The position numbers were made by a program, and so were the translations under genes. A stretch of DNA of 64,000 nucleotides, from the IMG/VR virus record IMGVR_UViG_3300042564_002819, positions 266,025 to 330,024 of that record; one strand, 5' to 3'. Below the pieces are notes generated by a model. That model did no database searches and was not told where the DNA came from. It saw only the letters and a program-made list of their open reading frames with translations. Shown piece by piece: positions 23,955 through 64,000 of the stretch. The first letter of the stretch is position 1. Each line of letters starts with the position of its first letter.

Positions 23955-24029
23955 GCCGTGCTTGGTGTAAGGGTAGCATACCGCACTGTGACTGCGTTGG
24001 AATAGGTTCAAATCCTATACACGGTACCA
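23955..24029 (+). tRNA. tRNA-His(GTG), no G-1
   Basis: CGCA-CTGTGAC-TGCG; G1:U72, A73. Confidence 0.88.
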
Positions 24030-24041
24030 ATACAAATTTAA

Positions 24042-24635: not shown

Positions 24636-24691
24636 GTGATATTCCTTGTATAACTAAAACGTATTTATAAAACTTAAAATAAGAGAGATAA

Positions 24692-25123
24692 ATGATGAGC
24701 AAATATGACACATATAACAGATTAACCGAACCTGTAAAATCATTTGATGAACTACGCGGCCGTGCGTTAACTCGTGTTGAAAAAATCGGAAACGACGAAT
24801 TGCGTTTCTACTTAACAGATGAACATTATGTTCGTATGCATCACAATCAAGATTGTTGCGAATCAGTAACAATCGAGGATATTGTTGGTGATTTAGACGA
24901 TTTAGTCGGAACTCCGTTGCTGGTTGTCGAAGAACGTGTTTCTCGTAACGATGGCGGTACAGATGAACTGTATTGTGATTCATACACTTGGACATACTAC
25001 AGTTTTCGCACTATCAAAGGTAGTGTAGATATTCGTTGGTATGGAAGTAGCAATGGATACTATTCAGAAGGTGTTGACATTGACATTGTAACACCCGATG
25101 CAGAAAATCAAGTAGAAATCTAA
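24692..25123 (+). CDS. Conserved phage hypothetical protein
   Basis: HNQDCCESV...WTYY...RWYGSSNGYYSE. Confidence 0.75.
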   Translation: MMSKYDTYNRLTEPVKSFDELRGRALTRVEKIGNDELRFYLTDEHYVRMHHNQDCCESVTIEDIVGDLDDLVGTPLLVVEERVSRNDGGTDELYCDSYTWTYYSFRTIKGSVDIRWYGSSNGYYSEGVDIDIVTPDAENQVEI

Positions 25124-25192
25124 GGCCAAAGGCTTAGATCACATCAAGTTAAACTGTATTATTTCTATATACTGTCATTTTATAAATATTTT

Positions 25193-25705
25193 ATGAGGGT
25201 ATTACTAATAATAACGCTATTATTATCTCTTTCTGCTTGTGCTGATTTTAAGAAAATTCTTCGACCCGAACCTACACCAGAACCGATAAAAACAGCAATA
25301 GAAAAAGTAGGTTGGAACGAGCATCAAGACCGCAGAGAAATAAGAGAATTTACTGGTGTAGATCCAGTAAGTACACAATGGTGTGCTGCGTTTGTAAACG
25401 CAGTTCTTGAAGAAAATGGGTTACCTGGATCGGAGTTCTATAACGAAAATCCACTGTTAGCAAGAAGTTTTCTGTCCTGGGGTGTAGAGGTAGAAGAGCC
25501 CGAATACGGCGATATTGTAGTATTTGCTCGAGGCAATGAAGCTTGGAAGGGTCATGTTGGGTTTTATGTAACTTCGACATATTTAGAAGGTCAAAAACAC
25601 TACTTAGTTCTTGGCGGAAATCAAAACAACAGTGTCACATACAAAGCATATCCTACTCGTAGACTGCTTTCTGTAAGACGACTTACAACAGAAGATACTG
25701 AATAA
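25193..25705 (+). CDS. TIGR02594-type NlpC/P60 (CHAP-like) peptidoglycan hydrolase, lipoprotein
   Basis: Lipobox LSAC; WCAAFVN, ARSFLSWG, GDIVVF, GHVGF, LGGNQ; TATAAATA at 25181. Confidence 0.85.
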   Translation: MRVLLIITLLLSLSACADFKKILRPEPTPEPIKTAIEKVGWNEHQDRREIREFTGVDPVSTQWCAAFVNAVLEENGLPGSEFYNENPLLARSFLSWGVEVEEPEYGDIVVFARGNEAWKGHVGFYVTSTYLEGQKHYLVLGGNQNNSVTYKAYPTRRLLSVRRLTTEDTE

Positions 25706-25718
25706 AATTTAGTTTAAT

Positions 25719-25795
25719 GCTCTCGTAGCTCAATGGATTAGAGCGTCGGTCTACGAAACCGAAGGTTAGAGGTTCGAGTCCTCTCGAGAGTGCCA
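25719..25795 (+). tRNA. tRNA-Arg(ACG)
   Basis: TCGGT-CTACGAA-ACCGA; CCA. Confidence 0.93.
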
Positions 25796-25858
25796 AAATA
25801 CTAGTTGACACTGGCATAGACAAGTGTTATTGTGAGTGCAACAAGAAAGGAAATACAC

Positions 25859-26155
25859 ATGAATAAAATTCTAATTTCTGCACTTTTTGCCTTTGTTTCT
25901 ACTGCTGCTACTGCAAAAACAGTTTATTACCCCGAAGCTGCATGTAACGAAATTCTCAGCAGCGAATACAGCACTGGTGGGGGTGATTCCAGCTGGGAGA
26001 TGTACGAAATTCTTTGCCGTGACGCTAATGGAAAATACACTACCTTTGTTACCAGCTGGATGAGTGTTGCAGGGTTCTTTGGTATGGGTCGAGTTGCATA
26101 CGAAGAAACGATTGACCTTGTACCCTACAACGGTACTACATTGAAGGCTGAATAA
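25859..26155 (+). CDS. Secreted hypothetical protein
   Basis: Signal peptide; SD AAGGA; TTGACA upstream. Confidence 0.65.
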   Translation: MNKILISALFAFVSTAATAKTVYYPEAACNEILSSEYSTGGGDSSWEMYEILCRDANGKYTTFVTSWMSVAGFFGMGRVAYEETIDLVPYNGTTLKAE

Positions 26156-26156
26156 A

Positions 26157-26600
26157 ATGAAAATCGAATATCGTAAAGGCAACATGTTTGAAACTGACAT
26201 CCTGCATATTGCACATGGCTGCAATGCACAAGGTGTTATGGGATCTGGCGTTGCTAAGATTGTAAAAGAAGATTACTTTGATGCATATCGTTTCTACGCA
26301 GAACAGTACGACGAGCATGGACTTAAATTAGGAGATGTGCAGTTTGTTCCTGCAAACGGCAAAGTAATCATCAATGCTGTTACGCAGAATCTGTACGGCA
26401 AAGACGGTCGTCGTTTTGTTAATTACGAAGCAGTTGCAGAGTGCATGAGAACTATTAATAGTGTACTTAAGCAAAGTGGCGAAACTCATGTTGCTATGCC
26501 GCAAATTGGTGCCGGCCTTGGTGGCGGCGATTGGCGTGTGATTGAAGCAATCATTGAAAGCGAAATGACAGACATTCAACCTGTGGTGTATGTACTGTGA
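26157..26600 (+). CDS. Macrodomain (ADP-ribose binding/hydrolase) protein
   Basis: YRKGNMF, HGCNAQGVMGSGVA, MPQIGAGLGGGDW. Confidence 0.92.
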   Translation: MKIEYRKGNMFETDILHIAHGCNAQGVMGSGVAKIVKEDYFDAYRFYAEQYDEHGLKLGDVQFVPANGKVIINAVTQNLYGKDGRRFVNYEAVAECMRTINSVLKQSGETHVAMPQIGAGLGGGDWRVIEAIIESEMTDIQPVVYVL

Positions 26601-26771
26601 CAACACCCTTAGCAGATCAGAAGATATTCTCACTCAATGATCTCATTGAAATGGGTCTTATTACACGTAAACAGTTAGAAGATCACATCCGATACATGGA
26701 AGCAAAACAGTTAGTAAAAGAACTGTTTCCAGGAATGTTTTAAAAATAAAGAATAGGTAGCCGCGACTACC

Positions 26772-26903
26772 TTGGCTAGGAGACTATTTGCATTGTGCAT
26801 CGTGGGGCCTTTGTGTAGTAGACTGTTTCGTCTAACGGAGAGGACGCCGGTGGAGATCCGGAGATACAGGTTCGAGTCCTGTAGCAGTTTTGCTCCTAGC
26901 CAA
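26772..26903 (+). ncRNA. tRNA-like domain enclosed in a long stem (Y-RNA/YrlA-like candidate)
   Basis: TTGGCTAGGAG/CTCCTAGCCAA closing stem; inner cloverleaf with ACAGG-TTCGAGT-CCTGT. Confidence 0.5.
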
Positions 26904-26912
26904 AATAATTTA

Positions 26913-26988
26913 GCCTTCGTAGCTCAACTGGAAGAGCAAGGGATTTCTACTCCCTAGGTTGTGGGTTCGACTCCTGCCGGGGGCACCA
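26913..26988 (+). tRNA. tRNA-Arg(TCT)
   Basis: AGGGA-TTTCTAC-TCCCT; CCA. Confidence 0.92.
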
Positions 26989-27043
26989 AAAAAGCTGTTG
27001 ACACAGACTTGGCACTATGCTACAACAAGTTATTGAATAACAC

Positions 27044-27448
27044 ATGAGGAACACTGAGATGAAGACTGCTTACAAGAACCGTGACGGCGAATGGGTTGTG
27101 GCCGAGCAGATCAAGATGAGCCGGTATGACCTTGAAGGTTCGGTAGATTCGATTAAGGCTGCACTGGACGAGGTTCGCGACCGTGCTACCGCAATGGGTA
27201 TGGTGGGTGAAGGCACTGTTGACATCAGCCTGAACCGCGGCTTCTACTCGGACGACTACGAAATAGAAGTGGAATACTCCTTCACTCGGTATGAATACCC
27301 TGTGGAGATGGAGCGGCGTTTGGAGCGTGAGGCCAAGGATAAGGCTGCGGCTGCTGCCAAGCGTAAGGAAGCCGCCCAGAAGCGGAAACTCAAGAACGAT
27401 CCTGAGTATGTGGAGTTTGAACGGCTCCGGGCCAAGTTTGGTGGTTGA
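27044..27448 (+). CDS. Hypothetical protein (GC-richer, probably early)
   Basis: TTGACA promoter at ~26998; start may be ATG 27059. Confidence 0.7.
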   Translation: MRNTEMKTAYKNRDGEWVVAEQIKMSRYDLEGSVDSIKAALDEVRDRATAMGMVGEGTVDISLNRGFYSDDYEIEVEYSFTRYEYPVEMERRLEREAKDKAAAAAKRKEAAQKRKLKNDPEYVEFERLRAKFGG

Positions 27449-27504
27449 CAACACTCTCCTGCTGTGCTATAACAACAGCATAGGGCAACACGAGGAGAAA
27501 TCAA

Positions 27505-27852
27505 ATGCCTTGTAGAGTCAACGACGAAGACTGGAAACCGCGTAAAGAAACCCGCCACGGGATGGATATCGAATCTTTCGAAGCTACACTTTGCGGCGTC
27601 TTCACTGCTGCAGAGGAAGGCGCCTTTGCGCCTACGGTTGTTGGCGGAGTTGATGGCTTGCTGGATGTGATCGACTGGAAAGAAGCCGGAGTGAAACGCA
27701 AGACCGTTGAAGCATGGTGGAAGCGGCATAAGGCAGAAGATGCTGCCCGCCTTGCTCGCGAATCTGCTGAACGGCGTAAGGCTGAACTCAAGCGGATTGC
27801 GATCGGCAAACTCACTGCAGAAGAACTGGAAGTGTTGGGGATCAAACTCTAA
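27505..27852 (+). CDS. Hypothetical protein
   Basis: SD GAGGAG; TTGACA/TATAAC promoter. Confidence 0.75.
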   Translation: MPCRVNDEDWKPRKETRHGMDIESFEATLCGVFTAAEEGAFAPTVVGGVDGLLDVIDWKEAGVKRKTVEAWWKRHKAEDAARLARESAERRKAELKRIAIGKLTAEELEVLGIKL

Positions 27853-27923
27853 CACTTTCTGGTTGACATCCTACCTACACCGTGCTATGTATATTGTATA
27901 GGGCAACAAGAGGACAACCACAG

Positions 27924-28175
27924 ATGCCGAATCCTGCTACTGCTCCCCGTGACGAATTGAACGAGTTTACTCGCTCTGTATGGCTGCTTGGTAACAGCAA
28001 CTGGGGTAATCACGGTGTACGTCTTCGGAACGGGTTGATTGTCAAACCGATCTACAAGCCCGCAGAAGACGAGACCAGTGAAGATGCATTCTTCACCGAA
28101 GACTATGAATACTGCTGGAACCTGGACGGCACTTCGGTAACCCGCAGGGACTTTGATATGATGGAGATCGTGTGA
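27924..28175 (+). CDS. Hypothetical protein
   Basis: SD GAGGA; TTGACA upstream. Confidence 0.65.
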   Translation: MPNPATAPRDELNEFTRSVWLLGNSNWGNHGVRLRNGLIVKPIYKPAEDETSEDAFFTEDYEYCWNLDGTSVTRRDFDMMEIV

Positions 28176-28176
28176 T

Positions 28177-28584
28177 ATGATCAGAGACCTATTCGTTCCT
28201 GTGGCTGAACTGCTGTTCTGGTTCACCGGCGGAGAACTACTGCTGAATACCTGGTGGTTCTTTGTGTGGGTTGTTGGTGGTGCGTTCCTTGTAACCTTGC
28301 CGCTGTGGTTAGGTATGCGTCTGGCCAGACGTGGTAGTAACCTCAAGTGGATACCTGGCACACTCTTCCTAGTCGGCTTCTTCCCTGCCTTACTGCTGAT
28401 CACCAGCCCAGGCATCATCCAAGCCGACTTGATGGAAGAATGCCTACCCGTCCAGACCGTAACAGTGGATACCGCACAGGTCAAAGGTATTGAAGTTCGA
28501 GTTCGCCAGTGTCGCTTCAAGGCCAACTACTATGACAAAAATTATGGTGAATGGCAAGCCTGGGCGGTTGACCGGCACCAATAA
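28177..28584 (+). CDS. Membrane protein
   Basis: Two hydrophobic segments. Confidence 0.65.
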   Translation: MIRDLFVPVAELLFWFTGGELLLNTWWFFVWVVGGAFLVTLPLWLGMRLARRGSNLKWIPGTLFLVGFFPALLLITSPGIIQADLMEECLPVQTVTVDTAQVKGIEVRVRQCRFKANYYDKNYGEWQAWAVDRHQ

Positions 28585-28869
28585 CTGTATTATAAGCTGC
28601 ATAAGGAGAGACCGGCAACTTGTGTAGTGCATGTAGTGACGACTTGCGGATAACAGGTGGGATCGTGACATGTTGTAAATCTTTATGTAAGGGGTCGACA
28701 CTTTATATAGAGAGAACGCTGCATACGCTGTGGGACCTCGGCGTATCATTAAGGTGATCAAATCACGCAGGGGTAAAAGCCCTAATGAGGGGTCCTAGGA
28801 ATTAAAGGAAATACTGTGAGATATAGAAAGTTTTACGACGACTTCTAGGCTATAACCTAGGAGAATCAA

Positions 28870-29076
28870 ATGGCAAAATCACCTGTTTACGGCAGAGGCC
28901 GTAATCGTAAACATAGAGGGCACCGCGGCCCTGTTCACGCTGCGGCTGCTAACATCAATATGCGTGGCAAAAAAAGCAAACCTGACCACTGCTGGTGCTG
29001 TATTTGTATTGACATGCGTGAAGATATCTTGTATCGTATACACAAGAAGGAGATGAGAGATGAAAGAGACACGTAA
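28870..29076 (+). CDS. Small basic Cys-containing protein
   Basis: SD AGGAGA; CWCCIC. Confidence 0.6.
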   Translation: MAKSPVYGRGRNRKHRGHRGPVHAAAANINMRGKKSKPDHCWCCICIDMREDILYRIHKKEMRDERDT

Positions 29077-29584
29077 GTATCTAGTATTTTTAGACATTGA
29101 CGGCGTTTTTACTAGCTCTCGTGTTCACTTTGCACACGCTGCTGCTTATGAAATGTGGCACAGATTTGATCCTGTAGCAGTTGATTTTATGAACAAGATT
29201 CATGACAGATATCCTGTGGAGTTTGTGATCATGAGTACTTGGAAGGACAACCTTCGCAGTGACGATAACAACGTAAAACACTGGGTTCATGCTGCGTTTG
29301 GCAACAGTGGCTTTCGTGGGCAACTTGCTACACCTTGGAAAACAGATCCTGACAACGTCATCTGGCAGCGTAAAGGTGCAAATGATCGTGCCTACGAAGT
29401 AAAAGAATATTTAGAACTATACGCAACAGATATAAAAGATTACATTTTGTTTGATGATAATCGCTATCAATTCAAAGAAGTGCTAGGCGTTAATCGCCTA
29501 GTTCATACAGATCACGAAAATGGTCTGTTATACAAGCATATGCTAAATGCTCATAGTTTGATGGGACAGTGGCACGAGCGGTGA
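29060..29584 (+). CDS. HAD-superfamily protein (Swiss-Army-knife RNA-repair-like)
   Basis: VFLDIDGV, IMSTW, ILFDD. Confidence 0.8.
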   Translation: MKETRKYLVFLDIDGVFTSSRVHFAHAAAYEMWHRFDPVAVDFMNKIHDRYPVEFVIMSTWKDNLRSDDNNVKHWVHAAFGNSGFRGQLATPWKTDPDNVIWQRKGANDRAYEVKEYLELYATDIKDYILFDDNRYQFKEVLGVNRLVHTDHENGLLYKHMLNAHSLMGQWHER

Positions 29585-29616
29585 CATCGCTCGGAATAAT
29601 AACAAAGGAAACAGAG

Positions 29617-29826
29617 ATGACTAAAGAACAAGTTTTAAAATCGCTACCCACGTTTAAATTGCTGGCATGGGGAGAAACCGCAGAAACCAGCGGCAATGGA
29701 AAATATGTGCATTTTGATGCAAAAGAATCTAGTACACGTATCTTTACTATTGAAGCAATTCTTGCAGAACTAGATAAGCGTGACGACAATCCTAACCGAG
29801 ATTCTAGAAAAAAGAAGAAAAAATGA
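29617..29826 (+). CDS. Hypothetical protein
   Basis: SD AAGGA. Confidence 0.5.
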   Translation: MTKEQVLKSLPTFKLLAWGETAETSGNGKYVHFDAKESSTRIFTIEAILAELDKRDDNPNRDSRKKKKK

Positions 29827-29909
29827 TTAAGTTGCATATTGCTAATTTGGTTAATATTTTGTTATCCAAATTGCAAGAGATATTGTATAATAGATTAATA
29901 AATTAAAGT

Positions 29910-30482
29910 ATGTGTAAGTTAGTTTTTGTTTATAGTTCTATGAATTCCGGTAAAAGCCTAGCTGTTCTTACCAAAAATTATATGTTAAAAGAAAAAGGTT
30001 TTAAGACTGTGCTCATGAAGCCGGCAGTTGATACTAGGACTGCGGCAACTGTGGCTACACGCTTAGGCTTAGAAGAGCCCTGTGTTGTACTAGGAACAAC
30101 TGATTTGCCTAGTCATACTATACTAAAATCAGCACACGACAAGCCTGATTTTATTATTGTTGACGAAGCACAGTTTTTAACAAGCGAACAAGTTTGGGAC
30201 CTAGCTGGCTTAGTCGACAACTGGGGCATAAACGTGTATTGCTATGGTCTACGACTTAACTGGCAAGGAGAGTTTTTTACAGGATCGGAAGCACTGATGA
30301 AAATTGCTGATGTGCTAGAACCAATCGAAAACTTCTGTCAAATAAATAAAGGAGCACTAGCATTCTTTCATATTAAAAAAGCAGGTGGCGATAATCCTGT
30401 AGAAGTTGGAATGGAAGACATGTATGACACTGCGTCTAGAAAAGCCTGGAAGCAGTGGTATGACACAAAAAGGCCTCTGTAG
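29910..30482 (+). CDS. tdk: Thymidine kinase
   Basis: YSSMNSGKS, KPAVDTR, IIVDEAQFLT, YGLR. Confidence 0.92.
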   Translation: MCKLVFVYSSMNSGKSLAVLTKNYMLKEKGFKTVLMKPAVDTRTAATVATRLGLEEPCVVLGTTDLPSHTILKSAHDKPDFIIVDEAQFLTSEQVWDLAGLVDNWGINVYCYGLRLNWQGEFFTGSEALMKIADVLEPIENFCQINKGALAFFHIKKAGGDNPVEVGMEDMYDTASRKAWKQWYDTKRPL

Positions 30483-30548
30483 CTCAATGGATAGAGCAGC
30501 AGACTTCGAATCTGTAGGTTGGGCGTTCGAGTCGCTCCAGGGGTACCA
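30473..30548 (+). tRNA. tRNA-Arg(TCG)
   Basis: GCAGA-CTTCGAA-TCTGT; CCA; overlaps tdk stop. Confidence 0.9.
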
Positions 30549-30610
30549 AAATAACACTTGATCTCTTACTTTGCATAGTGTAAGCTGTAAGTATAGTAAA
30601 GGAGAATCAA

Positions 30611-30790
30611 ATGTGGAAACTTTATATTATGGAATCTGAACGCGGTTGGGGTCAACGAGTTGACGAAATACTAAAGTTCGACACGTATGAAGAGGCCGAT
30701 AAATACAAAAAAGAATTTAACAGTAAAAACAATCTTCCTGAAGTGCCTGATTGGTACATGTATGCAGATGGACCTGTTAAAGTAGATTAA
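30611..30790 (+). CDS. Small hypothetical protein (59 aa)
   Basis: SD AGGAGA; MWKLYIMESERGWGQRVDE...VPDWYMYA. Confidence 0.7.
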   Translation: MWKLYIMESERGWGQRVDEILKFDTYEEADKYKKEFNSKNNLPEVPDWYMYADGPVKVD

Positions 30791-30874
30791 GTCGCTGTGG
30801 TGTAATGGTAGCCACGACAGCTTGAGGTGCTGTTGCCGCAAGGCGTGGGAGTTCGAATCTCCCCAGCGACACCA
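30791..30874 (+). tRNA. tRNA-Leu(GAG)
   Basis: ACAGC-TTGAGGT-GCTGT; variable arm; CCA. Confidence 0.92.
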
Positions 30875-55104: not shown

Positions 55105-55194
55105 GGAGAGTTGGTTGAGCGGCCGATAACACTCGTCTACTAAACGAGCAGGGGGTAATGCCCCTCGTGGGTTCGAATCCCACACTCTCCGCCA
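55105..55194 (+). tRNA. tRNA-Ser(ACT), unusual A34
   Basis: CTCGT-CTACTAA-ACGAG; long variable arm, G73, CCA. Confidence 0.88.
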
Positions 55195-55211
55195 AAAATA
55201 TAAATACTTAC

Positions 55212-55583
55212 ATGCTAATAAATGAAATTTTTACCGGGTATACATTAAAAGACTGGACAACTGTTGAATTGCTGGAAAGTTCTGGTAATTGGATGACCAC
55301 TCAAACGACTGCATATAAAAAAGGATTAAAATTCTATTCAAAAAATGCAGTCGTTATGAACAGTTTAAGTGAATTGCTTGGGTTTATACAGCAACATACG
55401 TCACCACCGCCAACTGATTCTTATCCTCCAAAATTTAATGTACACATGATTCCAAAACATAAATATTATTCCAGAGAACTTTGGTCACATCTAAAAGGAC
55501 AAAATATTGGACTATTGTTTAGTGTTGAACCAGGAGTTATAAATTTAAGATGTATAGGAACACATGACGGATGCGGTATTTAA
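55212..55583 (+). CDS. RelE/YafQ-like protein
   Basis: WSHLKGQNIGLLFSVEPGVINLRCIGTHD; TAAATA 55201-55206 then ATG. Confidence 0.5.
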   Translation: MLINEIFTGYTLKDWTTVELLESSGNWMTTQTTAYKKGLKFYSKNAVVMNSLSELLGFIQQHTSPPPTDSYPPKFNVHMIPKHKYYSRELWSHLKGQNIGLLFSVEPGVINLRCIGTHDGCGI

Positions 55584-55804
55584 AAAATATATTGACACAC
55601 ATCTCTAACTATGTTACTACAGTAATAACAAAACTAGTAGGAGCAAAGACAGTGTACAACGAAAGTGATATGACTAACATTGAAACTGTTCAATCGCTTG
55701 AAAAGCATCTCGAAGAAATTGCAGTTGAAAAACCAAAACCGAGACGCGGCAGACCGAAAAAAGATAAATAAAAGATAAATAAAATAAAGAGGAAAAGACT
55801 TTCT

Positions 55805-55897
55805 ATGAACTTAACGAGTGCATCATCGCTAGTATGGACAAACGGATTACAAAATCCGGGCAATGATCTATGCTCGGAGGGTTATGGAAACGGTTAA
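55805..55897 (+). CDS. Putative attenuator leader peptide 2 (30 aa) for tRNA array 2
   Basis: MNLTSASSLVWTNGLQNPGNDLCSEGYGNG; SD AGAGGA; GGAGGGTT at 55876-55883. Confidence 0.72.
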   Translation: MNLTSASSLVWTNGLQNPGNDLCSEGYGNG

Positions 55898-55920
55898 CAA
55901 TGAGTTAACAAAAAATTCCA

Positions 55921-55956
55921 AAAACCCTCCAAGCAAGAAGCTTAGGAGGGTTTTTT
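55921..55956 (+). terminator. Attenuator terminator 2
   Basis: AAAACCCTCC-AAGCAAGAAGCTT-A-GGAGGGTTTTTT. Confidence 0.87.
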
Positions 55957-56102
55957 AATATGAACACGAAAGTTTTAAGAGACTATAAGGCACTACTAAA
56001 AGACTACAACGAAGGCAAAATTAGTTACAAAGAATTTGTTGATCAAACACTTCCGCTGTGGAATAAATTAAACAACTTGTTCGAAAAAGATTAAAAAAGC
56101 AG

Positions 56103-56188
56103 TTGACATAGAGTAAAACATACACTATATTAACTAAACAAACAAAAAATAAAACGTAACGCAAGTTACACGCTCTTTGACAATTTAG
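56103..56188 (+). promoter_or_regulatory. sigma70 promoter, hairpin and boxA-like antitermination site
   Basis: TTGACA-17-TATATT; GTAAC-GCAA-GTTAC; GCTCTTTGACAATTTAG. Confidence 0.7.
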
Positions 56189-56268
56189 ATTTGTTGTTTA
56201 CATCGTAAGATGTAGTAAACAACGCTCACTTAGACGCAAGTCGATAATAGTGGGGGTAAGTAGAGAAT

Positions 56269-56409
56269 GACTCTACTTACACGTATTAACTGGTAGCTGG
56301 TTCGATTCCGGCGTAGAGTCTAGGTGACTATGAAAGGTTTGATTCCTTTGTACTACTGGTGTAGCAAATTGGACGACAGTCCGCCAAGTTAGTACGTGTA
56401 AGTAGAGTC
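56269..56409 (+). ncRNA. Long-stem RNA with two T-loop arms
   Basis: 17-bp perfect stem; GCTGG-TTCGATT-CCGGC and AAAGG-TTTGATT-CCTTT. Confidence 0.55.
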
Positions 56410-56677
56410 GAGCAATTGAATTATTCGATGCTGTGAAGTATTTCTAACAGCATTTGATGATTGTGCCATGTGGTAAAAAGATTGCTTACAGCTAGAAAAA
56501 AGCTGACTACAATAATACACGGTAATAGAAAAGACCAAATCTTTTTTAACATCGTGTATTTATAGAAAAAACTAGTGCAGGAGGATAACTCTGTAAGTCA
56601 CAAGAACAACGGTGCCGCATGACTCAATTGCGGTTAAATTACCCGAGTAGTGCCGGGCAGAGCCAAACACACAATGT

Positions 56678-56753
56678 TCCTCGTTAGCTCAGTTGGTAGA
56701 GTATTTGACTGTTAATCAAAGTGTCGCTGGTTCGAGCCCAGCACGAGGAGCCA
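56678..56753 (+). tRNA. tRNA-Asn(GTT)
   Basis: TTTGA-CTGTTAA-TCAAA; CCA. Confidence 0.93.
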
Positions 56754-56822
56754 AAATTGAGAAGGGGATAAACACGGCAGTCTCATTGCGTAGCAACGGT
56801 GCCCTTTCTTTTAGAATAATGC

Positions 56823-56898
56823 ATCGGTATAGCTCAGCTGGTAGAGCAGCGGTCTCCAAAACCGCGTGTCCTGGGTTCGAATCCTAGTGCCGGTGCCA
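56823..56898 (+). tRNA. tRNA-Trp(CCA)
   Basis: GCGGT-CTCCAAA-ACCGC; CCA. Confidence 0.93.
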
Positions 56899-56905
56899 AA
56901 AATAC

Positions 56906-56997
56906 GGATTGATGGGTGAGAGGCTTAAACCAGCAGATTGCTAATCTGTCGTACCTTGTAAAGGGTACCGAGGGTTCGAATCCCTCTCGATCCGCCA
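56906..56997 (+). tRNA. tRNA-Ser(GCT)
   Basis: GCAGA-TTGCTAA-TCTGT; long arm; CCA. Confidence 0.93.
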
Positions 56998-57008
56998 GAA
57001 TAAGATAC

Positions 57009-57083
57009 GGGCTGTTGGTATAGTTGGGAACACAGTAGCTTTGCAAGCTTCAATCACCGGTTCGAACCCGGTACGGTCCACCA
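57009..57083 (+). tRNA. tRNA-Ala(TGC)
   Basis: G3:U70; AGC-TTTGCAA-GCT; CCA. Confidence 0.9.
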
Positions 57084-57142
57084 AAATAATGCGGGATTAA
57101 CTCAGTGGTAGATAAATACTTTAAATAGGAGATACTCTACCA

Positions 57143-57556
57143 ATGGCTAAAACGTTCAACTGTTTAAATTGTAGTAAAGAAAGTAAATGGAGTTATAGCA
57201 GCACTAACAAGTATTGCAGCGGCGATTGCTTTCAAGAACACAAATGGAAAACTGTAAAAAAACTTGAAGTAGAAGCAGGGTTAGTCAATGACGGAAGCCC
57301 TGCGTTAAAAAAATACCTTGTTGAAACAAAAGGTGAATGCTGTGAAGAGTGCAAAGTTGGCACTGTTTACAACGGAAAGCCATTAACACTAACTGTTGAT
57401 CATATTGATGGTAATAGTGATAATAACTTTCCAGGCAACCTTAGACTTTTATGTCCTAATTGTCACAGTCAAACTGAAACATACAAAGGACGAAACAAAA
57501 AGAATAGTGCTCGTTCTCGATATATGAGAAAGTATAGAGATAATTTGCGGAATTAG
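57143..57556 (+). CDS. HNH homing endonuclease
   Basis: CEEC...LTVDHIDGNSDNN..NLRLLCPNCHSQT; SD AGGAGA. Confidence 0.92.
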   Translation: MAKTFNCLNCSKESKWSYSSTNKYCSGDCFQEHKWKTVKKLEVEAGLVNDGSPALKKYLVETKGECCEECKVGTVYNGKPLTLTVDHIDGNSDNNFPGNLRLLCPNCHSQTETYKGRNKKNSARSRYMRKYRDNLRN

Positions 57557-57621
57557 CTCAGTGGTAGAGCAGGGGTTTTACACACCTCAGGCCGGGAGTT
57601 CGACCCTCTCATTCCGCACCA
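57547..57621 (+). tRNA. tRNA-Val(TAC)
   Basis: GGGGT-TTTACAC-ACCTC; CCA. Confidence 0.9.
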
Positions 57622-57732
57622 AGTTTAGACTGGATATAATCACCCCTTGTGAGGGTGGCCCAAGGACTCAGTAACGAGATACAGCGAAGGGTTGTTGGTC
57701 AAGGCTGCAAACAGCCCAGTCTAAAGCAATAC

Positions 57733-57821
57733 GGACACTTGGCAGAGATGGATTATTGCACCGGTCTTGAAAACCGACGAACCGCAAGGTTCCCAGGGTT
57801 CGAATCCCTGAGTGTCCGCCA
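57733..57821 (+). tRNA. tRNA-Ser(TGA)
   Basis: CGGT-CTTGAAA-ACCG; long arm; CCA. Confidence 0.92.
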
Positions 57822-57897
57822 TAAGCACACTAGCATCAGGCTAGTCCAGACCGTAAGGTTAACGGTGACAAGCGGGGAGAGACCCGCACAAAAATAC

Positions 57898-57974
57898 GGC
57901 CTGTTAGTCGAGTGGTTTAAGATGCCTGCCTGTCACGCAGGAGATGATGGGTTCAATTCCCATACAGGTCGCCA
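57898..57974 (+). tRNA. tRNA-Asp(GTC)
   Basis: CCTGC-CTGTCAC-GCAGG; CCA. Confidence 0.93.
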
Positions 57975-58126
57975 AATTGAAAGGAAGGCTCATAGTTTAC
58001 GTTTAGCCCGTTACGACGGTTTGGGCGGAAAATGGTTGAGTCACGGCACGGGCGGGTCGGGGGCTGCGTGACGGCATTGAACTATGAAGCAGTTGTCGGT
58101 CTGCGTTAACAAACACCGTCAAAATT

Positions 58127-58200
58127 GCGGGTATGGTGTAGCGGTAACATGCGAGCCTTCCAAGCTCTTGTCACGAGTTCGAATCTCGTTACCCGCTCCA
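58127..58200 (+). tRNA. tRNA-Gly(TCC)
   Basis: GAGC-CTTCCAA-GCTC; U73; CCA. Confidence 0.93.
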
Positions 58201-58225
58201 ATTTATCCGTATGTGAGAGGACAAT

Positions 58226-58492
58226 ATGAAAACAGAAGATGAAAAGAGAGAATTTTACGAGCGTTGCTCCTCTATGTTAGGAATAGCTCACGTTTACAAC
58301 ACGCCAGTTCCACGACGCAATAGATGGAACGCAAGACGACTGGGCAACGGACGTTATCCAGGATTTGGACTAATACAGTGCTACGGAAACGGAGCAAGAG
58401 TAGTTAGTCGACAAGGAACACGTATGTTTTATACATACGAAGCAGTTTATGAATATTTGCAGATTGTGCTTGACGCAACTGCAAAAGCGTAG
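58226..58492 (+). CDS. Hypothetical protein
   Basis: SD GAGG; RWNARRLGNGRYPGFG. Confidence 0.7.
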   Translation: MKTEDEKREFYERCSSMLGIAHVYNTPVPRRNRWNARRLGNGRYPGFGLIQCYGNGARVVSRQGTRMFYTYEAVYEYLQIVLDATAKA

Positions 58493-58507
58493 TATAAAAA
58501 CTATAAC

Positions 58508-58583
58508 GCCCTTATAGCTCAGCTGGTAGAGCATCTGATTTGTAATCAGAGGGTCGGCGGTTCAAGTCCGTCTGGGGGCACCA
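58508..58583 (+). tRNA. tRNA-Thr(TGT)
   Basis: TCTGA-TTTGTAA-TCAGA; CCA. Confidence 0.94.
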
Positions 58584-58590
58584 AAATTAT

Positions 58591-58666
58591 GTCGCGTTAG
58601 CAAAAGGTTAATGCGTGTCCTGTGCAAAGGACAAGGACGGTGGTTAAACTCCCCGACGCGACTCCA
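58591..58666 (+). tRNA. Atypical tRNA, Cys(GCA)-like, 8-nt anticodon loop
   Basis: GTCGCGT/ACGCGAC, U73, CCA; TGTCC-TGTGCAAA-GGACA; bulged T-stem. Confidence 0.55.
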
Positions 58667-58672
58667 AATAAT

Positions 58673-58754
58673 GCGGATGTGGTGTAATGGTAGCCACGCT
58701 GGTCTTAGAAGCCAGTGCGTAAGCGTGAGAGTTCGAGTCTCTCCATCCGCACCA
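58673..58754 (+). tRNA. tRNA-Leu(TAG)
   Basis: CTGGT-CTTAGAA-GCCAG; CCA. Confidence 0.92.
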
Positions 58755-58798
58755 AAATATTTCTTATCTTAAAAAGTTTTAAATTTAGAAAGATTAAC

Positions 58799-59242
58799 AT
58801 GCAATTTTATGAAAAAGTAACTTTTTTACCAAGCATTCCAGAAGGTTTAATAAAACCTTTAGATATAATCGAATCGATGCCGAATGTTTTTCCAGATCCG
58901 GATTACGCTCATACTTATGCCAGCTATAAGGCAAATGACGATTTACAAGCTTGGGCACAAAGTTATTTTGACTTTCCTGTACTTGCAAGATATCAGGTAA
59001 TTAAACAACAATTGCCTATTCATGTTGACGTTGGAATTGTAGGAATAAAATATAACTACCTTATTAGCAGGGGTGGTGACGATGTAAAAACAAGATGGTG
59101 GGATAGTGTAGAAAATCCTTCAAAAATACTTTTTGAAACTACTTCGCCATTACGTGTGTGGCACAGCTTAAACATCGAAGTGCCACACGATATAACAGAA
59201 ATTAGTTATCCTAGAATTAGTGTAACTATAAGAAAAAAATAG
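58799..59242 (+). CDS. Hypothetical protein, possibly cupin/2OG-Fe(II)-like
   Basis: PIHVD...PHDI...RISVT; ATG after the tRNA. Confidence 0.55.
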   Translation: MQFYEKVTFLPSIPEGLIKPLDIIESMPNVFPDPDYAHTYASYKANDDLQAWAQSYFDFPVLARYQVIKQQLPIHVDVGIVGIKYNYLISRGGDDVKTRWWDSVENPSKILFETTSPLRVWHSLNIEVPHDITEISYPRISVTIRKK

Positions 59243-59270
59243 TAATAACTTTTTTAAAGAAAAATACTGT

Positions 59271-59346
59271 TGGGAAGTAGCTCAATTGGTAGAGTAGCGG
59301 ACTTTGAATCCGTTGGTTGGTGGTTCGAATCCACCCTTCCCAGCCA
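59271..59346 (+). tRNA. tRNA-Gln(TTG)
   Basis: GCGGA-CTTTGAA-TCCGT; U1-A72; CCA. Confidence 0.93.
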
Positions 59347-59352
59347 AGATAT

Positions 59353-59429
59353 CGGAGTATAGCACAGCCTGGTAGTGCGATGGTTTTGGGTACCATAGGT
59401 CGAGGGTTCGAATCCTTCTACTCCGACCA
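59353..59429 (+). tRNA. tRNA-Pro(TGG)
   Basis: ATGGT-TTTGGGT-ACCAT; CCA. Confidence 0.92.
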
Positions 59430-59646
59430 CGATTAAACTGTTGATCTAACCTCGGACTCGAACAAATAGCCATAGGCTTAGGCAGGTAGTACGGCGGATT
59501 AGTGTTAGACAACATTCGGACCAAGTAATCCGTGAGGTCCAGCTATTAGTGATGGCGGGGACGAACAAGCGGCTGATTTGGTATCAGTCGTGAGGCGGTA
59601 AGCTGCACCATAGGTGTCGTAGGCCGGGACTTGTTCAATTTATTAT

Positions 59647-59724
59647 CTGGGTATAGCTCAGTCTGTGAAGAGTGCTCGCCTTGGAAGCGAGAGGTCGCTG
59701 GTTCAAATCCAGTTACCCAGACCA
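59647..59724 (+). tRNA. tRNA-Pro(TGG), second copy
   Basis: CTCGC-CTTGGAA-GCGAG; CCA. Confidence 0.88.
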
Positions 59725-59731
59725 AAATAAC

Positions 59732-59806
59732 GCGGTGTTGGACAAGATGGATTGTCAGAGGATTCTAAACCTTAGTAGGCAGGATCGTTACCTGTACGCC
59801 GCACCA
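59732..59806 (+). tRNA. Atypical tRNA with CTA (amber-suppressor) anticodon
   Basis: GCGGTGT/ACGCCGC, A73, CCA; D-stem GACA/TGTC; TT-CTA-AA at canonical 32-38; T-loop ATCGTTA. Confidence 0.6.
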
Positions 59807-59889
59807 ATACACACATATGATGCCGTAGCCCGACGCTGGTATGTGTGAAACCTAAATATCGGGCATGTAATTTAATAAAGGAAAGAAAA

Positions 59890-60456
59890 ATGTCGTAGAT
59901 TGAATATGCTTGTAAAGATGTGGTGTTCCACTTTAACAAAAAACACTTGGAAGATGAAACTATTCCGATGTGGGTGATTAAGTTTCGAGGCGAAACCTAT
60001 TATGTAAATCATGTCGAATGTAGTGTTCCGTGGAGTACAAAAGAAACGCCTGATAACAATCACACTAAAGGCAGTATCAAAGTCAAGGATTGTTTAGTTA
60101 TTATTGATGATGAGAACTGTGCTAACATTCGTGTGTTAACTCCAGCAGATCGTTTGCGTCTTACTAAAGAACAAACTGTAAGAGTTATTACCGAGCAAGG
60201 AGCAAAACTGCGTACTGCACTACAGAACATGGCACATGGTCCGATTAAGTTAGCAGGTGGAGGATGTGGCACTACTTGGTATATCACAGATATTCCCAGT
60301 AAGAAACATTTAACAATACTACAACTACAGATTCCTTATATTAGGCAATTGATGCCCAATGAGGATTATTACAAGAAATATGATCAAACATCTTCAGATA
60401 CTGAATGGTTAGATGATGATGACGACTACGAGTGGGAAGACCTTTATGAAAATTGA
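59890..60456 (+). CDS. Hypothetical protein; probable true start 59890 with in-frame TAG at codon 3
   Basis: SD AAGGA; ATG TCG TAG ATT GAA TAT GCT TGT AAA GAT GTG, in frame with track ORF 59920-60456. Confidence 0.65.
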
Positions 60457-60625
60457 AGTGCCTCACTCGTTACTAAAAGAAGTCTGTGCTACAATTCGTC
60501 AATTCAAATTAAGGCACGGGCCATTCTACAAACTGTTAAATAGCTATAGGATATATTTGTATCCAAGTAGTAAATTAAGTTTGTTTTTGATTAAACATTC
60601 TAGCACTGTTACAGTGCTAGAATAA
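60446..60625 (+). CDS. Small hypothetical protein
   Basis: ORF overlapping the upstream stop. Confidence 0.45.
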   Translation: MKIEVPHSLLKEVCATIRQFKLRHGPFYKLLNSYRIYLYPSSKLSLFLIKHSSTVTVLE

Positions 60626-60626
60626 T

Positions 60627-60701
60627 GCGGGCGTAGCTCAGGGGTAGAGCGTCACCTTGCCAAGGTGAATGTCGTGGGTTCGAATCCCATCGCCCGCTCC
60701 A
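60627..60701 (+). tRNA. tRNA-Gly(GCC)
   Basis: TCACC-TTGCCAA-GGTGA; CCA. Confidence 0.95.
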
Positions 60702-60719
60702 ATTGTTGAAAGATATTGT

Positions 60720-61301
60720 ATGAGTAAAATAGAGCACTTTTATCATCTTCCGCACTTCGAAGAAGAATGGTTTACATATTCGGCTTTATATTCTGATATG
60801 GTAGCTAAATTTCCATCCGGAAGTAAGTTTGTTGAAGTCGGTTGTTGGAAGGGAAGATCTGCTGCTTATATGTGTGTAGAAATTGCTAATTCAAAAAAAG
60901 ACATTGATTTTTATTGTGTTGACTTTTGGCATGTATCAGCAGAGCATGAAATAGAAGAACCCCATCTAAAAAATTTGTATGAAATTTTTCTTTCTAATAT
61001 GAAACCAGTTGAAGCTTTTTATAAGCCAATGAAAATACCGTCGTCTGATGCTGCAAAAAAATTTAAAGACGAAAGTTTAGATTTTGTTTTTATTGATGCT
61101 GGACATCAATACGATGAAGTAAAAGATGATATTCTTGCATGGTATCCAAAAATTAAAAAAGGTGGCATACTAGCAGGACATGATTTTTATCCAACTGAGC
61201 CAACTTGGGGAGATGTTTCTAAAGTAGTAAACGAACTTTTTCCAAATAATTATGAAGTTTTAATAGAACAAAGTTGCTTTCTAGTAAATAAGCCGGTATA
61301 G
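60720..61301 (+). CDS. Class I SAM methyltransferase (Methyltransf_24-like)
   Basis: FVEVGCWKGRS, DFVFIDAGHQY, GGILAGHD. Confidence 0.88.
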   Translation: MSKIEHFYHLPHFEEEWFTYSALYSDMVAKFPSGSKFVEVGCWKGRSAAYMCVEIANSKKDIDFYCVDFWHVSAEHEIEEPHLKNLYEIFLSNMKPVEAFYKPMKIPSSDAAKKFKDESLDFVFIDAGHQYDEVKDDILAWYPKIKKGGILAGHDFYPTEPTWGDVSKVVNELFPNNYEVLIEQSCFLVNKPV

Positions 61302-61365
61302 CTGAGTGGTTTAGCAGCTGATTAGTAATCAGCTGACGGGAGTTCGATTCTCTCTACCGGCACCA
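61292..61365 (+). tRNA. tRNA-Thr(AGT), unusual A34
   Basis: GCTGA-TTAGTAA-TCAGC; GCCGGTA/TACCGGC; CCA. Confidence 0.88.
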
Positions 61366-61400
61366 AATCTAAATTTTTTATTAATTAATAGGTATCCAAG

Positions 61401-62156
61401 TTGAAAATAGTCGACGAAAGAAAAGATCCAAATTTTGGAACAGTAATGAATTTTGAACATATTAGTTTGCCTCCTCAAGGGTATAACGGTAAACTGTTTT
61501 TAGATTTTTCTAAGTATGCTAATTTTGATTTTGAAAAAATGGATACAGAAATATGTTTAGCATTATCAAAAATTGATTTAAATAAATATCCTATTGTTTC
61601 GGGGGTTATGCCTCCAAAATTAAAATACGGAATATTTGAAAATGAAGTAATGTACAACTTTACTGGAGATAGAGAAAATTTAAAAAATCTTTCTCCAATG
61701 GAGATGCGTAAATTTTTGTTTTTTAAACACAAAACTCTTTTACCTTGGTTCTTTGTTGTAGACTTAAAACCGAGTCTCTTTTTTGAAAGATCGGAAGATA
61801 AACATCCGTGGAGCGAAGTTAGTAAACTTACTCCATATACAAGACAGTGCATTGAGAGTCTTCCTTTCAAATCAATAGGCAGAGTAGTTATATATGGATC
61901 TTGGCCACAAGCTGAAGTACCATGCCACAGAGATTGGATACCCGACGGTGTTTTCCATCATCATATAAATCTTAATCCTGGTGGATACAGACCAGTCTAC
62001 ATTTATGATCCTGAAACAGATACAAAGAATTATTTACCGGAAAGCTATAAGTTGTATGCTTATCAAACAACCGATTACCACGGCGTAGATGCTCTTACGC
62101 ATTTTAGTTATACAATACGCATAGACGGAATTTATAATGACGACGTAGAATTGTAA
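61401..62156 (+). CDS. Putative 2OG-Fe(II) oxygenase-like protein
   Basis: IGRVVIY...VPCHRD...DYHGVD...IRIDG. Confidence 0.55.
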   Translation: MKIVDERKDPNFGTVMNFEHISLPPQGYNGKLFLDFSKYANFDFEKMDTEICLALSKIDLNKYPIVSGVMPPKLKYGIFENEVMYNFTGDRENLKNLSPMEMRKFLFFKHKTLLPWFFVVDLKPSLFFERSEDKHPWSEVSKLTPYTRQCIESLPFKSIGRVVIYGSWPQAEVPCHRDWIPDGVFHHHINLNPGGYRPVYIYDPETDTKNYLPESYKLYAYQTTDYHGVDALTHFSYTIRIDGIYNDDVEL

Positions 62157-62230
62157 TTTACAAATTTGAAAACGTTAAAAAACGATAATATAAATACTGT
62201 AAATTATTAACAAATAGTGAAATATATAAA

Positions 62231-62992
62231 ATGAATTATCACATAAAAAACTTTATTATCCCTATACATGTCTTATTTTTAGTATCACTAATTGGTATGT
62301 ATTTAAATATAATCGATTTTCATATTTGGTTATTTTTAATAGGGTGGACTTTGATCTATGGGCTAGGTCTTGTTGTAGGATTTCATAAATTGTTATCCCA
62401 TAGCTCTTTTAAAACAAACAAATACATATCTTATGTGTTAGCTTACTTAGGATGCTTAGGAATTAGCGGATCACCTATATGGTGGGCTGCTATACATAGA
62501 GGACATCATCATGCTCATACTGAGACTGAAAAAGACCTTCAAAGTCCACGTCGTGGATGGCTTACATCTTACATAGGTTGGCAGTTTGGTGAAGAAACAA
62601 GTAAAATAAGTTTAAAGTATGCATCTGATTTAATAAAAGATCCTTTTTATCTTTTTTTACACAAGAATTATAGATTAGTTGTTTGGAGTACAGTGATTAT
62701 TGTTGGTATGTTGTCACCATCTGTTGCAGTTTCATTATTAATATTTCCGATGATTGCAGCACACCATGGAGAAAATATTACCAATTCATTTGGTCATAGC
62801 AGGTTTGCTGGTTACAGAAATTTTAATACCAACGACGACACTATAAATAACCCATTGTTAGCATTTATAACTTGGGGTCAGCTTTTGCATAACAATCATC
62901 ATGCTAAGCCAAATAACGATAGTTTTGCCATTAAATGGTTTGAATTTGATCCAACTTCTCCTTTTGTATGGATTTTAAAAAAACTAAAATAG
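62231..62992 (+). CDS. Fatty-acid (delta-9-type) desaturase
   Basis: His boxes GFHKLLSH, HRGHHHAH, LHNNHH; TM helices. Confidence 0.92.
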   Translation: MNYHIKNFIIPIHVLFLVSLIGMYLNIIDFHIWLFLIGWTLIYGLGLVVGFHKLLSHSSFKTNKYISYVLAYLGCLGISGSPIWWAAIHRGHHHAHTETEKDLQSPRRGWLTSYIGWQFGEETSKISLKYASDLIKDPFYLFLHKNYRLVVWSTVIIVGMLSPSVAVSLLIFPMIAAHHGENITNSFGHSRFAGYRNFNTNDDTINNPLLAFITWGQLLHNNHHAKPNNDSFAIKWFEFDPTSPFVWILKKLK

Positions 62993-63049
62993 TTACAATA
63001 TAAACATTTTTCTGTAACAGAAAAAAAATAAAAAAGTTGAAAAAAGTGG

Positions 63050-63127
63050 TTGACCTTTGAGGCAACATGCACTATATTAACTACATAAGCAGCAAATGTG
63101 TTGCTTACACGCTCTTTGAAAATTTAG
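63050..63127 (+). promoter_or_regulatory. sigma70 promoter, hairpin and boxA-like site
   Basis: TTGACC-17-TATATT; TAAGCAGCA-AATG-TGTTGCTTA; GCTCTTTGAAAATTTAG. Confidence 0.7.
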
Positions 63128-63249
63128 TAACTTAACTGCAATAATCAACAGTTTAGCGAAAGGCTAAAGATTGTGGTTGTGCTGAGTAATTAACAGTTTA
63201 AATCAGCAAGTGATGCGTGATTAGGTAAACTGTTGTTTATTGCAGTTTT

Positions 63250-64000
63250 TAAGATGGGCGGCTTAGCGTCCACGTAAGGGTAAGTGCGGTAACGCACCCA
63301 AAGGCAGGTTTCCTATAAACTGCCGCCAGCAATGGTCCACCTAAGCAAGCCTGAACTAAGGTTGACTCGGTTTAACCCGAAAGCAACCTCCGTCCTTAGG
63401 CGGGCGGTAGGCAGTAAGTTAGAGTTGTAGTCCGAAAGGATAGGCACAGAGCCGGTCGGTGAGTGCTAAGAGGCTGTGGTGGCTGAACTGCAACATACCA
63501 AACTAACGAATGCTGAAGGTTAACAGGTAGCTACACTGTCTGAGCCCGCAAGCAAAGGCATGGTAGCATCACAAGAGTGGAAGGGTTAGGCCCCGGATAC
63601 TTGAAGTGACGTTGAGTAGCTCGCAAGGCAAAAGACAGTCGGTGTGTTGTATACTGTATCTAACAAGGTATGGTGCAACTGGGACAGCACATCGAAGTAG
63701 GTTCGCAATATTGCATAACGGTAATGCAATCGTCTTATGAAACGATGGATTGTAGGTTCAACTCCTACTATTGAAACAAAAGCGAAAGACTGTCCCGGTA
63801 CGTTGTGAAAGGTGGTTAATGCCACACTCGCAAGAGAATGTGGTCTACGGATGCTCGCAAGGCTGATGTAGTTGTTCGGAAAGATAGCGTAAGGGTTTAG
63901 CGACTCTGAACTGCTCGCAAGGCAGACGAAGGATAGAAGGACGAGTAGCAACGTGCGACGAGAGAAACGCCACTCTCCAAAAAAGGCACCACTGGGAGAT
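63250..64000 (+). ncRNA. GOLLD-like giant ncRNA (probably truncated by window end)
   Basis: No credible ORF; many GNRA hairpins; GAGTAGCTCGCAAGGCAAAAG, GGTGTGTTGTA...GCAGCACATC-like and AAAGCGAAAGACTGTC blocks resemble GOLLD as recalled; next to tRNA array. Confidence 0.7.

Follow-up and report, generated by a model that had tools for sequence, protein, structure and literature searches.

Why does a GOLLD RNA carry a tRNA-like element inside it? GOLLDs, discovered 15 years ago, are among the largest bacterial and phage non-coding RNAs and form cages built of RNA only, and an embedded tRNA is one of the few clues to their function. The copy considered here lies at one end of a 330,024 bp IMG/VR virus record from lake water. 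The window, by which we mean the whole stretch of DNA analyzed, is the last 64 kb of that record, and its end is the contig end. A first-pass annotation of the sequence had described at this place an Ile-UAU-like tRNA mimic displayed on a large GOLLD scaffold, for instance as a nuclease decoy or a processing site.

A 3'-truncated GOLLD RNA beside the tRNA arrays of a lake phage

The phage genome has a GC content of 37%, and its GOLLD lies where one is expected, on a virus contig and beside a tRNA array. The window holds 29 standalone tRNAs (30 by Rfam at gathering thresholds) in two arrays, at 22728-30874 and 55105-61365; nearly all encode CCA, and the last one ends at 61365. Several members of these arrays are unusual in their own right. 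A-wobble tRNAs occur among them, namely Ser(ACT) at 55105-55194, Thr(AGT) at 61292-61365 and Arg(ACG); in bacteria, A34 is unusual except in tRNA-Arg. At 58591-58666, within the second array, a standalone tRNA-like gene lacks CCA, and its anticodon loop, GTGCAA, is 6 nt long; reported by ARAGORN as 'tRNA-???(gc)' and scoring 43.2 bits with the Rfam tRNA model, it is a second aberrant tRNA of this phage. The 'tRNA-Leu(gag)' at 26820-26891 is 72 nt long, without a long variable arm or CCA and with a poor acceptor stem, and is probably another pseudo-tRNA, since a normal 84-nt tRNA-Leu(gag) is present at 30791-30874.

Downstream of the second array lies a GOLLD RNA. In an Rfam E-value scan of 62900-64000, the GOLLD family RF02032 matched 63639-64000 on the plus strand with 136 bits (E 1.4e-37), so that the identity given from motifs in the first-pass annotation is borne out by the covariance model with which it had proposed to check it. 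The alignment covers model positions 1-336 of 416 and is flagged as 3'-cut. An Rfam scan of the window at gathering thresholds reported no GOLLD: the cut-off of RF02032 is 150 bits, and this copy stays below it in all likelihood only because the contig ends ~100 nt before the end of the RNA. A covariance-model search of the whole phage genome found one GOLLD copy, at 126 bits.

For comparison we assembled related GOLLDs from four cultured phages (Phaeobacter phage MD18, DSS3_MAL1, Sinorhizobium phage Phosso and Roseobacter phage DSS3P8) and from 69 IMG/VR loci found by two conserved DNA patterns. Among the loci scanned with Rfam, complete GOLLDs score 150-209 bits; those of L012, L022, L017 and L007, which are 98.7-99.1% identical to the window over 63777-64000, score 190-196 bits. 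Homology to the 5' domains of related GOLLDs begins at 63250, exactly where the RNA had been taken to start. The window thus holds 751 nt (63250-64000) of an RNA that is ~850 nt long in relatives, and ~100 nt are missing by homology. A contig from a DNA run extends 317 nt past the window end. With circular permutation in mind, an Rfam E-value scan was made of the first 3000 nt of the contig and found nothing of the remaining GOLLD there. Many related loci likewise start or stop no more than a few hundred bases from their GOLLD; assemblies may break at this place where scaffolds that are nearly identical but differ in their inserts occur together. On the minus strand, an open frame of 121 aa (63586-63951) overlaps the tRNA-like insert and the GOLLD 3' domain in antisense; although almost certainly spurious, it could be called a gene by automatic annotation.

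The scaffold consists of the following parts:

63250-63638, plus strand: GOLLD 5' domain, variable and outside the Rfam model, delimited by homology to relatives
63639-63700, plus strand: conserved hairpin that opens the Rfam GOLLD model (model positions 1-62), from the cmscan alignment
63681-63687, plus strand: 5' strand of the closing helix, GGGACAG, which pairs with CTGTCCC at 63790-63796
63688-63703, plus strand: conserved single-stranded 5' linker, CACAUCGAAGUAGGUU, with a low column entropy (0.41)
63777-63789, plus strand: conserved single-stranded 3' linker, CAAAAGCGAAAGA, at about positions 140-160 of the Rfam model
63790-64000, plus strand: conserved GOLLD 3' domain, beginning with CTGTCCC, from cmscan; the contig ends at model position 336 of 416

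A consensus fold of 63250-63700, made from nine sequences and comprising the 5' domain and the next hairpin, contains 116 pairs, and compensatory changes are seen at 74 of these. The hairpin at 63639-63700 is 85-98% identical in lake relatives and holds GGGACAG in an internal loop. The pairing of this strand with CTGTCCC, noticed in the first pass, is a real helix that closes the linker: among 37 distinct linkers it is 100% paired, with covariation at 3 of 7 pairs and with variants such as GGAGCAG/CTGCTCC, GAGCCAG/CTGGCTC, GAGACAG/CTGTCTC and GGATCAG/CTGATCC. Within the 3' linker, AAAAGCGAAAGACUG is nearly invariant in two linker alignments, and the 5' linker is present also in GOLLDs that have no tRNA-like insert (e.g. 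L016, L025 and L032). The CTGTCCC strand stands just before the 3'-domain pseudoknot; up to the contig end, cmscan aligned both strands of this pseudoknot and the CGCAAG-capped hairpins with high posterior probability.

The insert folds as a cloverleaf and departs from a working tRNA

Between the two linkers lies the tRNA-like insert, with these features:

63704-63776, plus strand: embedded tRNA-like element, from the Rfam tRNA model (44.8 bits), ARAGORN and the covariation of three arms
63704-63710 and 63769-63775, plus strand: acceptor strands, 5 of 7 pairs formed, C1.A72 and G2.A71 mismatched
63713-63727, plus strand: D arm, GCAT-AACGGTA-ATGC
63729-63746, plus strand: anticodon arm, ATCGT-CTTATGAA-ACGAT, with the 8-nt loop CUUAUGAA at 63734-63741
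63752-63768, plus strand: T arm, GTAGG-TTCAACT-CCTAC

All sequence details of the cloverleaf drawn in the first pass, from stems and loops to flanks and the missing CCA, are present. The Rfam tRNA model (RF00005) scores the insert well above its cut-off of 29 bits (E 2.7e-6 for the whole window), and its arms covary among relatives, so the element does fold as a cloverleaf. ARAGORN returned it as 'tRNA-???' with the anticodon 'tatg' and a score of 104.3. Thermodynamic folding of the 77-mer alone neither recovered nor favored the cloverleaf (z -1.3). Thermodynamics by itself does not single this fold out; what supports it is the covariance model together with the covariation among relatives. 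The conserved D-loop GG (AACGGTA) and T-loop TTC (TTCAACT) are kept. The anticodon loop has eight nucleotides, its end bases C and A being unable to pair, and no CCA is encoded, the bases after 63775 being ACAAA.

These departures set the insert apart from the 29 standalone tRNAs of the same window and justify the term mimic. It forms 5 of 7 acceptor pairs (7/7 in 26 of the 29), has no CCA (encoded in 27 of the 29) and has an 8-nt anticodon loop (7 nt in 28 of the 29). The same contrast holds across all loci, where we compared 44 distinct embedded with 500 distinct standalone sequences: all seven acceptor pairs are formed in 1/44 vs. 424/500 (Fisher p 1e-30), CCA is encoded in 3/44 vs. 463/500 (p 3e-36), and the loop has other than 7 nt in 9/44 vs. 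1/500 (p 6e-10), with some standalone tRNAs under-counted through ARAGORN framing, a bias that runs against the contrast. In several relatives the insert has a UGA anticodon on a short type-I body and a true long-arm tRNA-Ser(UGA) lies in the same array; such inserts cannot be serine tRNAs. The embedded tRNAs of L030, L049 and L067 have CCA and 6-7 of 7 acceptor pairs, and in these lineages the insert may be a working tRNA. Likely, a real tRNA was captured in the linker and its acceptor end was later lost in the lineage of the window. The motif GGUUCGCA is found also in GOLLDs without a tRNA (L016, L025 and L032) and so is a part of the scaffold, a probable reason for the failure of the acceptor stem to pair at its top.

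Anticodon arms are diverse and mosaic among relatives

The first-pass annotation had suggested comparing insert anticodons among relatives. In 37 sequences this comparison gave 22 types of anticodon loop, several of them 8 nt long. A single stem, ATTCC/GGAAT, carries seven different loops, and, conversely, three stems share the 8-nt loop AUUGAUAA. Four variants share the motif UUAUG: CUUAUGAA in the window, UUUAUGGA in L055, UUAUGGA in L044 and UUUAUGU in L050. They differ in register and in loop length (7 and 8 nt). The window has G directly after UAU, where tRNAs that read ANN codons usually have A37. The label 'Ile-UAU' is therefore weak and we do not endorse it, since a register-shifting UUAUG fits recognition of a sequence better than decoding. 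We also considered whether the anticodon loop is the uniquely variable part of the insert and rejected this, as by entropy the variability of the anticodon arm as a whole is about the same as that of the variable loop and of the 3' acceptor strand. The claim is accordingly narrowed to the many loop types per stem and to mosaicism.

Mosaicism is seen when insert and scaffold are compared pairwise. Against L012, the window differs at 19/74 positions of the insert and at 9/425 of the rest of GOLLD (Fisher p 5e-11), and against L017 at 30/74 and 66/674 (p 1e-10). Against L007, the insert is no more divergent than the rest (11/73 vs. 97/578, p 0.87). Arm haplotypes violate the four-gamete rule, e.g. 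D-stem GCTC/GCAT against anticodon-stem ATTCC/ATCGT. By sequence comparison, then, insert and scaffold differ in their histories, with the anticodon arm changing much faster than the scaffold or independently of it, and the mosaic pattern suggests that co-circulating variants recombine or that selection is very strong locally.

One far-reaching reading of this diversity is that the inserts of this GOLLD clade are swappable specificity cassettes and that near-identical scaffolds exchange arms and anticodon loops. Its basis is the recurrence of odd 8-nt loops, such as AUUGAUAA and UUAUGNA, on different stems. Were this so, each cage would hold 10-14 copies of one anticodon-loop bait, an arms race with host recognizers of anticodon loops (anticodon nucleases, modification enzymes) would drive the diversification, and GOLLD would gain a concrete anti-defense role. 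We regard this reading as unlikely.

Self-complementarity of the loops was looked at separately. The loop AUUGAAC of L015, L017 and L018 is exactly complementary to the T-loop GUUCAAU of the same insert (7 nt), and in window-type inserts UUAUG is complementary to the D-arm CAUAA. Such complementarity could allow loop-loop contacts between subunits or be due to chance; matches of 5-7 nt are near the chance level, and we dropped them as evidence. A scan of each GOLLD for the complement of its own anticodon loop elsewhere found no recurring homologous site.

The insert is present in unprocessed GOLLD transcripts

Two elements precede the RNA:

63050-63078, plus strand: sigma-70-like promoter, TTGACC-17 nt-TATATT with an A-tract upstream (consensus scan, 10/12 positions)
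63086-63249, plus strand: leader with a variable long hairpin, arms at 63134-63155 and 63226-63247 (BLAST opposite-strand self-match)

A similar arrangement, TTGAC-17/18-TATATT/TATAAT with an upstream A-run, also precedes GOLLD in L017, L018, L022, L019, L009 and L011, with spacers that differ among these six relatives. From the promoter we infer a transcription start near 63086. The block 63021-63130 is kept in L017, L018 and L022; the region of the leader hairpin is not conserved. Directly upstream of the promoter, the plus-strand open reading frame 62231-62992 has histidine boxes and matches the DesA fatty-acid desaturase family (E 3.6e-18, far under the curated cut-off), and may have the role of an auxiliary metabolic gene.

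In three lake metatranscriptome runs, drawn from different studies, contigs were found only on 63295-63985. They begin at 63295-63299, inside the 5' domain, and in the same runs there were none on the leader (63086-63249) and none on 61000-63220, whereas a DNA run covers the preceding 2.2 kb fully; DNA carry-over into the RNA libraries is argued against yet possible. One RNA contig, 63679-63807, is identical to the window, 8-nt loop included, and spans both junctions of the insert, and two longer variant contigs (63390-63985 and 63622-63892) also bridge both. Unprocessed GOLLD RNA with the insert therefore exists, although contigs are assemblies and a minor processed species of tRNA size is possible. 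Word depth in the three metatranscriptomes is 79-220 over 63610-63693 and 3-10 elsewhere on GOLLD, which suggests many co-occurring GOLLD variants that share 63610-63693. One RNA and one DNA contig join about 63483/63493 to 63610/63611, as in variants without ~120 nt of the 5' domain.

These transcripts bear on the idea that the insert is a working phage tRNA stored in the GOLLD precursor, to be released by RNase P/RNase Z, given its CCA by the host and used to read AUA (Ile) or a four-base codon. Stored, covalently linked tRNAs have been hypothesized in the literature (PMC12286853, PMC12990946), and there would be some use for one here: the loop contains UAU, as does the 7-nt loop of L050, AUA is used at 23.9 per 1000 codons in the phage genome, and a standalone tRNA-Ile(UAU) is absent from the phage's tRNA genes. 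The CCA-bearing, well-paired inserts of L030, L049 and L067 would also fit. However, two CAU tRNAs exist already, one of them possibly a lysidine tRNA-Ile2. The insert itself combines an 8-nt loop, a G after UAU and two mismatches at the top of the acceptor stem with the lack of a CCA that 27 of 29 neighbors encode; UUAUG shifts register among relatives; RNA contigs cross both junctions; and no pseudo-tRNA transcript was seen in M. aubagnense (PMC6582537). Taken over both sides of this evidence, storage of a functional tRNA in the window's GOLLD is quite unlikely.

The fold of the insert is under selection

Covariation was assessed in the 37 distinct related linkers. Over the cloverleaf and the closing helix, 93.6% of cells are paired, compared with 73.5% after shuffling and 30-49% when the partners are slid. 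Both-sided changes occur at 20 of 26 pairs, counts of covarying cells being inflated by shared ancestry, and pairing in the stems of the D, anticodon and T arms reaches about 99%. In a subgroup of 26 sequences, whose inserts share the invariant 5' strand GGUUCGCAA, a mismatched acceptor and the absence of CCA, these three stems are each 100% paired, ten pairs covary and up to five pair types occur at one position. Column entropy is lowest in the D loop, in the T loop and in the linker flanks, which are single-stranded. The D and T loops form the tRNA elbow, which RNase P recognizes.

The evidence says that the insert is not simply decaying. A functionless relic of a tRNA gene that once landed in a tolerant linker could explain the degenerate acceptor stem, CCA and loop length, and would suit a linker that is the variable, disordered part of GOLLD (PMC12286853) and that holds no tRNA in L006, L016, L025, L032 and L045. 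Yet the arms are fully paired and covary in the very subgroup that already lacks CCA, the D and T loops are conserved, and 8-nt loop types recur on different stems, none of which is expected from neutral decay; we therefore consider a relic very unlikely. Most unlikely of all is a processing signal at which RNase P or RNase Z splits GOLLD into halves held by the 7-bp closing helix. In its favor, the elbow is the best conserved part of the insert, the closing helix covaries and would hold the halves together, and within the cage the 5' domain and the 3' domain form distinct bodies (PMC12286853). Against it, contigs from three RNA libraries pass through both junctions, the weak, mismatched acceptor stem makes a poor RNase P substrate, and GOLLDs without an insert keep the same scaffold.

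A tethered tRNA mimic is the probable role of the insert

Probably, the insert mimics a tRNA without decoding, has been retained for its shape, stays joined to the GOLLD RNA and lies in the lumen of the cage. The comparative pattern argues against simple 'tRNA storage' and for such a tethered mimic: in a clade of lake and alphaproteobacterial phages, the tRNA fold of the insert is retained and the requirements for charging are lost. The place of the mimic on the scaffold needs a qualification. That it is embedded in GOLLD holds, but 'displayed', as the first-pass annotation had put it, fits less well, for the linker faces the cage interior; in cryo-EM structures of other GOLLDs it is variable, disordered and located in the lumen (PMC12286853). 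The cage of other members is a homo-oligomer of 10 to 14 subunits (PMC12286853, PMC12990946), and its opening has been drawn as exposing 'covalently linked tRNAs' (PMC12286853).

How such a mimic might work can be outlined as follows. The GOLLD gene lies shortly downstream of the phage tRNA array and would be transcribed from a sigma-70-type promoter of its own. The tRNA-derived element in the variable linker would keep an L-shaped fold, with D, anticodon and T arms, conventional decoding having been lost, and it would remain covalently joined to the GOLLD RNA. If the linker points into the lumen as in the published cryo-EM structures of other GOLLDs, there would be one tethered tRNA mimic per cage subunit. 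The mimic would then engage a partner that recognizes tRNAs, such as a host anticodon nuclease, a tRNA-modifying or tRNA-processing enzyme, or the ribosome, with the variable anticodon loop as a specificity element and the insert as a tethered bait, sponge or handle. This last refinement, a bait or sponge whose specificity lies in the anticodon loop, is tentative and carries less than half of the confidence that we place in the mimic as such; proteins would hardly reach a bait in a closed cage unless the cage opens.

For experiments, culturable phages with the insert (MD18, DSS3_MAL1 and Phosso) and without it (DSS3P8) make the function of GOLLD more testable. For annotation, inserts of this kind have been entered as ordinary tRNA genes. 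In GenBank the inserts of MD18 (L003, 1599-1672) and DSS3_MAL1 (L004, 1598-1673) are each a tRNA-Arg, and the surrounding GOLLD is unannotated. The anticodon loop of these two has a G in place of U33, which is near-universal in tRNA anticodon loops.

Comparison with known systems

tRNAs or pseudo-tRNAs in GOLLD linkers have been published (PMC12286853, PMC6582537, PMC12990946), so the arrangement is not new, and this locus adds a member. Linker tRNAs were described in env-38 and others (PMC12286853). A 2026 review proposes 'inhibited storage' and refers to a Mycolicibacterium GOLLD with a tRNA-Phe in J13/15 (PMC12990946). Behra et al. (2019) reported a pseudo-tRNA gene inside the M. aubagnense GOLLD that gave no separate transcript on a Northern blot (PMC6582537). 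The window copy shares with the published insert-bearing GOLLDs the family RF02032, the position of the insert between the 5' and 3' domains and the phage-borne setting beside a tRNA array, and the M. aubagnense insert was likewise called a pseudo-tRNA and was not separately expressed (PMC6582537). It differs in belonging to a 330-kb lake phage of a clade related to alphaproteobacterial phages and in the 8-nt loop of its insert. In the literature searched we found no systematic statement of inserts without CCA or a full acceptor stem, of their covarying arms, of recurrent 8-nt loops or of mosaicism.

The cultured relatives, MD18, DSS3_MAL1, Phosso and DSS3P8, are homologous to the window in the hairpin, the linker flanks and the 3' domain, where they are 57-66% identical to it. 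The first three have an insert at the same site, with 7-nt loops containing UCU instead of the 8-nt loop of the window; the DSS3P8 GOLLD, unlike that of the window, has no tRNA. Within 60-700 nt after GOLLD, roseophage-type relatives have a two-piece (permuted) tmRNA gene of the alphaproteobacterial kind:

L003, 2214-2629: tmRNA after GOLLD
L004, 2060-2476: tmRNA after GOLLD
L006, 2152-2538: tmRNA after GOLLD
L008, 1457-1832: tmRNA after GOLLD

This tmRNA is present in MD18, DSS3_MAL1 and DSS3P8, and none was found after the GOLLD of Phosso; the window contig ends before that position.

Beyond GOLLD, ROOL is likewise a large phage-borne RNA that is found near tRNA islands, and its cage, too, has a disordered linker inside (PMC12286853). 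It is unrelated to GOLLD in sequence and fold, and the window has no Rfam ROOL match. Frameshift-suppressor tRNAs such as sufD and sufJ have an 8-nt anticodon loop together with a perfect acceptor stem and CCA, and are charged. The insert resembles them in its cloverleaf with one extra anticodon-loop base; unlike them, it lacks the perfect acceptor stem and the CCA and remains inside an RNA of ~850 nt. A further parallel is offered by the bacterial Y RNA-like YrlA RNAs and the tRNA-like domain of tmRNA, in which a tRNA-shaped module of a larger non-coding RNA is bound by tRNA-binding proteins and does not decode. The insert, too, is a tRNA-shaped module inside a larger non-coding RNA, but whereas the modules of YrlA and tmRNA mimic the acceptor and T arms and have no anticodon arm, the insert keeps its anticodon arm and it is the acceptor end that has degenerated.
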